The notes under the pieces were generated by a model that was given only the letters and a program-made list of their open reading frames with translations, was not told the DNA's origin and ran no database searches. From Dendrobates tinctorius (taxonomy: Eukaryota), in the NCBI RefSeq assembly GCF_039654945.1, contig NW_027361671.1, positions 67,084,001-67,148,000 of the forward strand: a stretch of 64,000 nucleotides of DNA, written 5' to 3'. Below are positions 22,601-23,902 of the stretch, piece after piece. A program made the translations under genes and the position numbers. Numbering within the stretch: the first letter of the stretch is position 1; the number at the start of each line of letters is the position of its first letter.

Positions 22601-23902
22601 ACCAATTTTTTTTTTAAATTCACAATTTTCTTTCAACATCAAATAAAATGAAAACCCCTATGTATATTCAGCATTATCATAGTTGTCACTGACATGGAGA
22701 AATATTTTGTGAGGTCATTTTTGCCACTTTTTTTACCCACACTTTAAATCTTTTTCCCTATTTTCCAGAACATTGAATGGTAAAATAAATAATGTTCAAA
22801 ACTACAGCTCGGTCCACTAAAAAAACAAGTCCACGTATGGCTACTTTGGCAGAAAAATGAAAAATAGTTATTGGTTTTATAAGGAGTAAGAAAAAAAAAA
22901 CGGACAGTTACCAGCTCAAGAAGGGGTTAACAAATATAGCTCCAGAAGAAATATTACAATTTTATACAGCATTATGTAAATGAGCAGGAAATGTCTAATA
23001 TTTGGGCTCCCATTCATAATAACTGTCCATTAGCAAAAAGTTCCTGTTGCCCATAGCAATGAATCACAGCACAGATTCTATTTCTTAACATTCTATAGAA
23101 CAATGAAAGCGCATTGTGATTGGTTGCTATGGACAACAAAGACAGTTTTTCTACACTTTCGATAATTGTGGCCAGTACATAATATTAGGAGTATAATCCC
23201 ACTCACCCCAGTCTTATTATACTGAGCAGTGTCCATCTTACCTGGTCCCTCTTTATCCAGTGAGGTGTTTGGTGGAGAATCACTCAGCTGTTTGTTATCT
23301 GGGATGGAGATGTTCACAGCTGATGTCCTGGACCTCCGTGATGCCCCATTCCCATTTATAATGGGTTTAGCATAGATGAGACGTCTTCTACATTGGACAA
23401 CCCAGTCTCTGCTGTTCCTGATCCTCTTCTGGGCTGCCGCTCTTTGTAGGTTTGGTGTCACCAGACTTTCAGATCTGGAGAATGTGACATGTCTTGGTGT
23501 TTCTTGGAGAACCTCTTCCAGCTCTAACTCTGCGCTGATGTTTCTACGCTTATTGAGGATGTCTTCTTTGTTCCTCCTCCGTATTTCAGGGACCAGATCT
23601 CCGATTTTTTTCAATGAGATAAGAAAGGCCCTCTGAATCTCAGCGGAGGCTGCAGAGTGAGAATCCATGAGGGTCTCCATTTGCCTTTTCTCTGTAAGGA
23701 TCTCATGTCTTTTGGTCTTTCTCATTTTCTCCAGATTTTGTCGTTTGAAAGCCATTTCTGAGGCTTCAGTGTCCATGTCCAGTAATATAGAGTCTTTTCG
23801 CCCTAAAGCGAACAATGGTACCTGCTCTTCATTTATTCCTCTCTTCTCTCTCAGAACCCAATCTCTTTGGGCTCTTCTCTCTTTATCCATTTTAAAATGC
23901 AT
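19616..23902 (-). CDS. 8-exon Ser/Thr protein kinase (AGC/PKC-delta/theta-like catalytic domain) with N-terminal IBB-like repeats, ~545 aa
   Basis: Exons 23902-23242, 21786-21596, 21420-21170, 20994-20932, 20808-20670, 20513-20322, 19900-19772, 19627-19616. All introns are GT-AG, phases are compatible and the 1638 nt have no internal stop. Motifs: [11 protein letters not shown], alpha[41 protein letters not shown]. Start uncertain (alternatives 24013, 23890). Confidence 0.88.
20028..20306 (+). mobile_element. tRNA-derived V-SINE in kinase intron 6
   Basis: A box tggctcagtg, B box ggttcaaatcc, V-domain gggtttcctctgggtactctggtttcctcccaca, AT-rich tail. Confidence 0.85.
22050..22930. mobile_element. 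Non-autonomous DNA transposon remnant ending AAGGGG|TTAA (piggyBac-like), in kinase intron 1
   Basis: Terminus aaggggttaa at 22921-22930; AT-rich body; left boundary approximate. Confidence 0.45.
23020..23165. mobile_element. Short imperfect palindromic MITE
   Basis: Arms gttgcccatagcaa..aatcacag and tgtgattggttgctatggacaac are mutually reverse-complementary. Confidence 0.55.

Follow-up and report, generated by a model that had tools for sequence, protein, structure and literature searches.

Does the basic N-terminal exon of a frog protein kinase gene encode a ligand of the nuclear transport receptors and, if so, how much of one? The question is raised by a 64,000-nucleotide stretch of the Dendrobates tinctorius genome (contig NW_027361671.1, positions 67,084,001 to 67,148,000; hereafter the window, in whose own numbering all positions are given), in which a gene on the minus strand encodes a kinase resembling protein kinase C (PKC) theta. 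A sequence-only reading of the window had proposed that the first coding exon of this gene contains four repeats of the importin-beta-binding (IBB) helix of importin-alpha, that these stand in place of the C1/C2 regulatory domains of a PKC-like kinase and that the kinase might thereby bind importins multivalently. Our analysis upheld the repeat and its position in the gene but restricted the IBB likeness to one motif clearly and a second marginally. Genes of this kind are already present in the NCBI annotation under generic names; the N-terminal domain that they encode is undescribed and lineage-specific, with partial IBB mimicry. We read it, with a probability of roughly 40 %, as a putative karyopherin-recognised targeting and regulatory module for the kinase.

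A four-fold basic motif and its likeness to the IBB

The four 17-amino-acid (aa) basic motifs are all found where the sequence-only reading had placed them, on the minus strand and spaced 52, 47 and 53 aa apart: motif 1 at 23834–23884 (aa 3–19), motif 2 at 23678–23728 (aa 55–71), motif 3 at 23537–23587 (aa 102–118) and motif 4 at 23378–23428 (aa 155–171). They follow the consensus K-x-R-[RK]-x-x-[RK]-[DEH]-x-[VI]-[LV]-x-x-[KR]-R-x-[ILM], with a common register of basic residues at positions 3, 4, 7, 14 and 15 and hydrophobic residues at positions 10, 11 and 17, each of which is held in 80–100 % of 19–25 sequences. As had been anticipated, the motifs are kept among relatives (approximately 25 paralogs and orthologs); motif 4 is absent from four paralog models. 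A loose form of the pattern, picked after the motifs had been seen, occurs four times in exon 1, while it appeared in 12 of 20,000 composition-preserving shuffles and at most once in each. In profile–profile alignments built from 22 family sequences, unit 1 aligned with units 2, 3 and 4 in the register of the sequence-only reading at 4.7, 5.4 and 6.3 standard deviations (SD) above column shuffles, respectively, and unit 2 with unit 3 at 3.1 SD; the pairs 2–4 and 3–4 were not significant. Because this independent family-profile test aligns the units in the register first proposed and above shuffles, we regard the repeat as real. It is short (approximately 17–22 aa), and the stretches between the motifs are not repeated.

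The resemblance to importin-alpha centres on motif 3. In importin-alpha, the KRR of the IBB sits in the groove that otherwise receives a nuclear localisation signal (NLS), and the IBB is released from importin-beta by RanGTP. Our reference consisted of 120 natural IBB fragments, all with the Pfam IBB domain (PF01749), and a local hidden Markov model (HMM) built from 100 distinct cores. A typed 60-aa KPNA2 bait was a 100 % match to one of these fragments (P0028), and the string ELRKAKKDDQMLKRRNV, which had been quoted as the end of the KPNA2 helix, is likewise found in real IBB fragments (P0028). The gap-free alignment of repeat 3 to this string was confirmed, with identity at 8 of 17 positions; repeats 1, 2 and 4 matched it at 4, 4 and 3.

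Alignment of the family profiles to the IBB using hhalign separated the four units sharply. Unit 3 returned a probability of 66 % (P 5.5e-5, score 25.0), approximately 8 SD above its shuffles (9.7 ± 1.8), with 0/60 reaching the score. Unit 2 was marginal (probability 4 %, P 0.01, score 15.6; shuffles 10.2 ± 2.0, approximately 2.7 SD, 1/60 reaching the score). Unit 1 (probability approximately 1 %, P 0.044, score 12.2; shuffles 10.1 ± 2.5, 22 % reaching the score) and unit 4 (no probability, P 0.79, score 5.8; shuffles 9.2 ± 2.4, 97 % reaching the score) were indistinguishable from shuffled sequence. The description of 'four IBB-like repeats' is thus too broad, as similarity above shuffled basic-helix controls holds for unit 3, is borderline for unit 2 and is lacking for units 1 and 4. 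With the local HMM, the window exon scored 9.9 bits, above 1000/1000 global shuffles and above 99.8–100 % of shuffles in blocks of 10, 17 or 25 aa (p ≤ 0.002), unit 3 aligning to positions 28–46 of 56. Other dendrobatid members also exceeded their shuffles, whereas the Bufo and Rhinoderma members did not.

A comparison with Pfam, whose E-values already account for 24,736 models, bore out the expected IBB match in part. IBB was the sole recurrent family, matching 13 of 19 hyloid N-termini at E ≤ 1 and always on units 2 and 3; window exon 1 itself scored 18.5 bits (E 0.0029), or 20.0 bits with 12 extra upstream codons, below the cutoff of 23.8 bits. Two paralogs, P0002 (27.0 bits, E 6.6e-6) and P0027 (27.9 bits, E 3.5e-6), exceeded the cutoff. 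Unit 3 maps to profile positions 25–72 and unit 2, in some paralogs and at low scores, to positions 11–54, while the best stretch of the window protein (aa 102–139) covers positions 25–63 of 89. The unit 3 match consists mostly of the last ~19 residues, the C-terminal third, of the IBB helix, including KRRN[IV]S (aligned string ELRKAKKDDQMLKRRNVSS), and hhalign deletes 11 residues to carry the alignment into the N-terminal half. A KRR followed by N[IV]S occurs in motif 3 only, and no unit covers the full IBB core of approximately 40 aa, with its N-terminal basic moiety and long helix. The Lys/Arg-rich N-termini of Xenopus relatives, a natural basic-region control, gave no Pfam IBB match. At the level of sequence profiles, then, the NLS-like C-terminal portion of the IBB helix (ELRKAKKDDQMLKRRNVS) has a counterpart in unit 3 and a faint one in unit 2, beyond what either shuffled or natural basic controls give, and the N-terminal domain appears to be at most a partial IBB, with no complete unit and a place outside PF01749 by cutoff and by coverage.

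These results bear directly on the proposal that all four repeats are functional IBBs, which would bind importin-beta multivalently and let RanGTP control whether the kinase is held or released, as with spindle assembly factors, for instance on spindles or in gametes. All four motifs do keep the basic register of the IBB 17-mer (3, 4, 7, 14 and 15) as well as hydrophobic residues at 11 and 17, Pfam IBB matches recur across the family and the predicted helices are extended, without self-packing. However, against an IBB profile units 1 and 4 fare no better than column shuffles and unit 2 only marginally better, and the match is mostly to the end of the helix, with only unit 2 of some paralogs reaching further forward. 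High-affinity binding to importin-beta, as in the importin-alpha/beta complex, uses the whole IBB of approximately 40 aa. Four IBBs under Ran control are therefore unlikely.

Conservation, predicted structure and competing explanations

Exon 1 is 13 % Arg and 7 % Lys, and residues 1–171 contain 38 Lys and Arg against 28 Asp and Glu, giving a net charge of approximately +10. Across 14 full-length sequences, mean pairwise identity was 66 % for aa 1–171 and 62 % for the kinase domain, compared with 48 % for the Ser-rich tail and 34 % for the exon 2 linker. Motif 3 is the best conserved of the motifs (77 %), and the spacers between motifs range from 62 to 71 %. By these figures, the ~170-aa domain, which appears to take the place of the C1/C2 regulatory region, is as conserved as the kinase domain, and since its spacers are nearly as conserved as its motifs, it seems to be constrained as a whole.

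Several observations weigh against recognition of this domain by karyopherins. The conserved spacers suggest a larger interaction surface or fold rather than a set of independent short signals. The window protein fails the Pfam gathering cutoff (18.5–20 against 23.8 bits; E 0.001–0.003), and P0002 and P0027 pass it only through the summing of two stretches. Against PDB sequences, phmmer of exon 1 and the family-domain profile returned a single match, to bacterial SitA (E 0.6), and the domain profile found no importin-alpha, snurportin or other relative at E ≤ 10. A regular-expression scan of window exon 1, using consensus patterns, found no match to a class 1–4 or bipartite classical NLS; the only minimal NLS core, K[KR]x[KR], is KRIR at aa 155 in motif 4, which is present in 18 of 25 family members. 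Finally, the IBB likeness is weak or absent in the Bufo, Engystomops and Rhinoderma members (hhalign of unit 3: P 3e-5 in dendrobatoids, P 2.5e-3 in other hyloids), and hence may be neither ancestral nor functional.

Much of this would also fit a lineage-specific protein-docking or oligomerisation module that has no role in nuclear transport and whose IBB likeness is a by-product of a conserved basic helical motif. Conservation extends over the whole 170 aa, beyond the motifs; the IBB signal fades in non-dendrobatoid members; and no homology outside the family was found by phmmer, the PDB profile search or Foldseek, the last of which returned no PDB match for the AlphaFold2 (AF2) model of the N-terminal domain. 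That model, built on a 10-sequence alignment, predicts helices at residues 2–17, where motif 1 lies, at 39–128 (predicted local distance difference test, pLDDT, 80–96), which includes motif 2, and, with low confidence, at 146–170 towards motif 4, followed by disorder from residue 171. The long confident helix would suit a docking or oligomerisation surface. On the other hand, the predicted template modelling score is 0.25, so no compact fold is predicted for the domain and no packing is seen. A crude test for heptads, amphipathic periodicity (3.5 and 3.6) and i/i+3–4 salt bridges in the helices found none above shuffles, nor would a by-product be expected to show an order-specific IBB similarity that survives block shuffles and Pfam E-values that already allow for the number of models. 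We hold a docking or oligomerisation module to be possible, but tentatively so.

The IBB is a domain that folds on importin-beta. The periodicity result would weakly fit a helix of this sort, wrapped by a partner, and speaks, again weakly, against two other candidates, a coiled coil and a single stable alpha-helix, which were set aside because their periodicity and salt-bridge signatures did not rise above shuffles. A possible likeness to the basic N-terminal regulatory helices of NDR/LATS kinases was also dropped, as it was unsupported by the PDB profile search.

The target of the motifs might instead be the kinase that carries them: as pseudosubstrates or sites of autophosphorylation, they would replace the autoinhibition formerly provided by the lost PKC regulatory region. 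AGC kinases of the PKC type prefer basic substrates, and the kinase in question is PKC theta-like. KRRNIS in motif 3 and a basophilic Ser/Thr cluster in the predicted disordered tail, RRSRTS (23306–23338, minus strand; aa 185–195), fit the patterns R-x-x-S and R-x-R-x-x-S, and S187 and S190 of the cluster are nearly invariant, making it a candidate phosphorylation site. In paralogs, motif 1 ends in RERRG[IL]N, which may be comparable to the RRGAI of novel-PKC pseudosubstrates. Nevertheless, four copies spread across 170 aa would be atypical of a pseudosubstrate, and docking of the motifs on the kinase finds no support in a full-length AF2 model of paralog P0023 (18 sequences), whose mean pLDDT of 41.5 is too poor to show it. 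We consider self-regulation of this kind doubtful.

Basic helices may also bind calmodulin, nucleic acids or membranes. The nearest neighbours of the domain in the ESM Atlas are IQ-motif clusters, at scores of only 0.71–0.72, which is a lead at best, as the notes that accompany the tool warn that shuffled proteins often reach scores below 0.9. The Arg-rich helices and the Trp residues in motifs 1 and 4 would be in keeping with such partners; yet Pfam IQ (PF00612) gave no match at E ≤ 1 in any Pfam scan of exon 1 or of the family N-termini, and no significant amphipathic moment was detected. Binding of this type is distinctly unlikely to be what the motifs are for.

The kinase gene, its family and its surroundings

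Coding exon 1 (23242–23890, minus strand) comprises 216 codons plus one base within an open frame that spans 24046 to 23096, and encodes the basic helical domain and the Ser-rich tail. Its start is the ATG at 23890, a second in-frame ATG lies at 23902, and it ends in a consensus donor (AG/GTAAG, GT at 23241–23240); tblastn of paralogs P0005, P0017 and P0004 spans 23890–23225. Seven exons were placed on the minus strand using paralog proteins as tblastn guides, with the downstream kinase motifs on the same strand and single exons matching Pfam Pkinase. Exon 2 (21596–21786) encodes the poorly conserved linker and the glycine loop GKGGYGK, exon 3 (21170–21420) the kinase N-lobe with LLAIKIM and its catalytic Lys, exon 4 (20932–20994) a further part of the kinase, exon 5 (20670–20808) the catalytic loop, DFG and APE, exon 6 (20322–20513) the C-lobe and exon 7 (19733–19900) the end of the kinase domain, with a lower boundary at approximately 19733. 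At the 3′ end, the frame may either continue to a TAA located just below 19733 or be spliced, from a GTAAGT donor that follows PYYY, to one more short exon. All internal junctions are canonical (AG...GT), and the frame is kept across all seven exons, each of which is open. The predicted product is colinear with Ranitomeya variabilis proteins P0023 (81.6 % identity over 543 aa) and P0022 (82.5 %), the annotated Ranitomeya proteins being 535 aa in length. On splice-site logic and colinearity with annotated relatives, exon 1 is apparently joined to the six kinase exons.

The window kinase keeps GxGxxG, the catalytic Lys (AIK), the Asp of HxD, the Asn, DFG and APE. Its catalytic loop (exon 4/5 junction region, 20808–20932) has HSD instead of HRD, and as paralogs show HRD, HCD or HGD, the arginine of this motif is evidently variable within the hyloid-frog kinase family. 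The window kinase also lacks the activation-loop Thr typical of AGC kinases and the C-terminal tail. PKC theta provides the best PDB matches of the kinase domain (183 bits, E 5e-53), stopping near chain residue 291 of ~350, and Pkinase is matched in paralogs at E 1e-54 to 1e-58, which places the family in the novel-PKC (delta/theta) branch of the AGC kinases by its kinase domain. Pkinase is the sole Pfam domain in five full-length paralogs, with no match to C1, C2 or Pkinase_C at E ≤ 0.01. The claim that the basic N-terminus stands where a PKC-like kinase would have C1/C2 is thus supported: its exon opens the coding part of a PKC theta/delta-like kinase lacking both domains. The gene appears to be an intact member of a multigene family whose kinase domain derives from a novel PKC, the closest being PKC theta.

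A silent copy, be it an unexpressed recent duplicate or an incipient pseudogene, would need no function for its N-terminus. The region is dense in transposons, and HSD replaces HRD. The share of the sampled words of exon 1 was 0.37–0.46 in DNA runs, with no run above 0.46, and 0.20–0.25 in RNA-labelled runs of another organism label, figures that do not evidence expression of this copy. Set against this are the seven open exons with canonical splice sites, the intact catalytic Lys, Asp, DFG and APE, and the variation of paralogs at the HRD arginine too (HCD, HGD). That the window copy is a silent one is very improbable.

With exon 1 as the query, phmmer run exhaustively over 1.84 billion representatives returned nine matches, all at E ≤ 1e-22 and all from the same kinase family, with no importin among them; look-ups and word-indexed searches add approximately 20 family members. 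Members were found in Ranitomeya variabilis (at least 10 loci), R. imitator, Phyllobates terribilis, Anomaloglossus baeobatrachus, Rhinoderma darwinii, Bufo bufo, B. gargarizans and Engystomops pustulosus. The N-terminal domain was found in the Dendrobatidae, Aromobatidae, Rhinodermatidae, Bufonidae and Leptodactylidae only, and on these searches appears to be restricted to hyloid frogs, as a multigene family expanded in poison frogs. Full-length members are approximately 505–540 aa long, show Pkinase only in Pfam and bear NCBI names such as 'protein kinase C theta/delta type-like', 'Sgk1-like' or 'uncharacterized'.

Some annotated models depart from this plan. Anomaloglossus P0001 carries the N-terminal exon approximately 2.5 times, and Anomaloglossus P0003 has two kinase domains, both being fusions of tandem copies; in Ranitomeya P0002, the N-terminal exon is followed by an unrelated ATIYNDxVC repeat. 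Together, these models suggest that the family forms tandem arrays and has been rearranged locally. In E. pustulosus P0151, a family kinase follows a signal-peptide/transmembrane-like segment and acidic KPAEDDLKEVVVEKPACL repeats, with no basic domain, which hints at N-terminal exon swapping within the family. As this N-terminus has been replaced and those of Xenopus relatives are unrelated to the hyloid domain, N-terminal exons seem to have been exchanged within the kinase lineage.

Upstream of the exon 1 start, the frame stays open for approximately 50 codons (23903–24046, minus strand), with an in-frame ATG near 24010 (MTSSHS...ITALQTPKG...NEAKM) and a near-palindrome, GTGATGATGTCATCAC, at approximately 24000–24020. 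Its translation is conserved in Rhinoderma P0006, at the annotated N-terminus, and in Anomaloglossus P0001, at the junction between copies; it may represent either a 5′ leader kept by conservation or a longer, alternative form of the N-terminus. A simple-repeat array lies a short way upstream of the gene (24970–27474, plus strand); its overlapping frames encode a tandem repeat of the GLYYTILGG/CWAVLYH type. Either side of the gene, at 352–17000 and 44359–51974, are dense open reading frames of retroelements, comprising LINE/CR1-like reverse transcriptase and endonuclease and Ty3/gypsy-like integrase, reverse transcriptase and gag.

Proposed role and comparison with known systems

If the domain is a karyopherin-recognised module, its basic helices would be gripped by importin-beta directly or, via KRRNIS, by the NLS groove of importin-alpha, and this grip would direct or gate the access of the kinase to the nucleus. 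The adjoining RRSRTS cluster, with S187 and S190, could then serve as a phospho-switch for a basophilic kinase. A more specific version, in which units 2 and 3 (perhaps together with 1 and 4) are putative importin-binding helices, importins hold the kinase inactive or mislocalised and RanGTP releases it, has in our estimate only a slim chance of being correct. As to origin, the IBB likeness has more probably arisen by convergence towards a karyopherin-binding helix, or by mimicry of one at the level of the motif, than by descent from importin-alpha, and the weaker IBB signal in outgroup frogs would count mildly against descent from an importin-alpha gene.

Literature searches turned up neither a kinase described as having IBB repeats nor any work on this hyloid-frog kinase family. 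Should units 2 and 3 work as importin-binding helices, a kinase would be wired directly into the Ran/importin system, and should the helices engage karyopherins at all, a kinase would have traded its lipid-sensing regulatory domains (C1/C2) for a ligand of transport receptors. This would amount to the replacement of a regulatory domain in a vertebrate gene family that is young and duplicates rapidly, and to IBB mimicry outside transport adaptors. Regardless of karyopherins, the family presents an undescribed, well-conserved domain on an atypical PKC-like kinase with a non-RD catalytic loop and no AGC tail. The practical gain is modest: the domain has been delimited, its motif defined and its range among taxa mapped, and a few mechanisms have been put forward for testing.

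For the kinase domain, the nearest known systems are the novel PKCs delta and theta, theta being the closest, and the NCBI names of the paralogs agree. Novel PKCs have C2-like, pseudosubstrate and C1 regions and a Pkinase_C tail, whereas the frog kinase is without these and has a basic helical domain. Truncated PKC delta-like kinases are also encoded by Xenopus laevis and Pelobates fuscus (P0157, P0160 and P0161), with 37–42 % identity in the kinase domain. Xenopus P0157 and P0160 have short basic, NLS-like N-termini instead of C1/C2, which we count in favour of a targeting role for the hyloid domain, while in the Pelobates model (P0161) little precedes the kinase domain. The N-termini of these Xenopus and Pelobates proteins are not homologous to the hyloid domain, having neither the 17-aa motif nor a Pfam IBB match.

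Snurportin-1 and similar proteins offer a precedent for an IBB-type basic N-terminal segment that is attached to an unrelated functional domain and binds importin-beta directly (PMC2817886). Snurportin-1 has one IBB of approximately 40 aa that is recognisably homologous to that of importin-alpha, whereas the likenesses in the frog domain are partial and sub-threshold, and neither phmmer of exon 1 nor the domain profile against PDB found a sequence relation to snurportin.

The IBB of importin-alpha itself (PF01749; KPNA2 residues ~10–54) differs from the frog domain in several respects. The frog motif is present in four copies, two of which are not IBB-like; the N-terminal half of the IBB is matched weakly and by unit 2 only; the frog domain precedes a kinase rather than ARM repeats; and where importin-alpha has a flexible linker after the KRRNI region, the predicted frog helix continues. 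Both are nevertheless N-terminal, very basic, helical, extended and not self-folding, and the pattern E-x-R-x-x-x-K-x-D-x-x-x-K-R-R-N-[VI]-S is common to unit 3 and the last part of the IBB helix (8 of 17 residues identical without gaps, for the window sequence and for the consensus alike).

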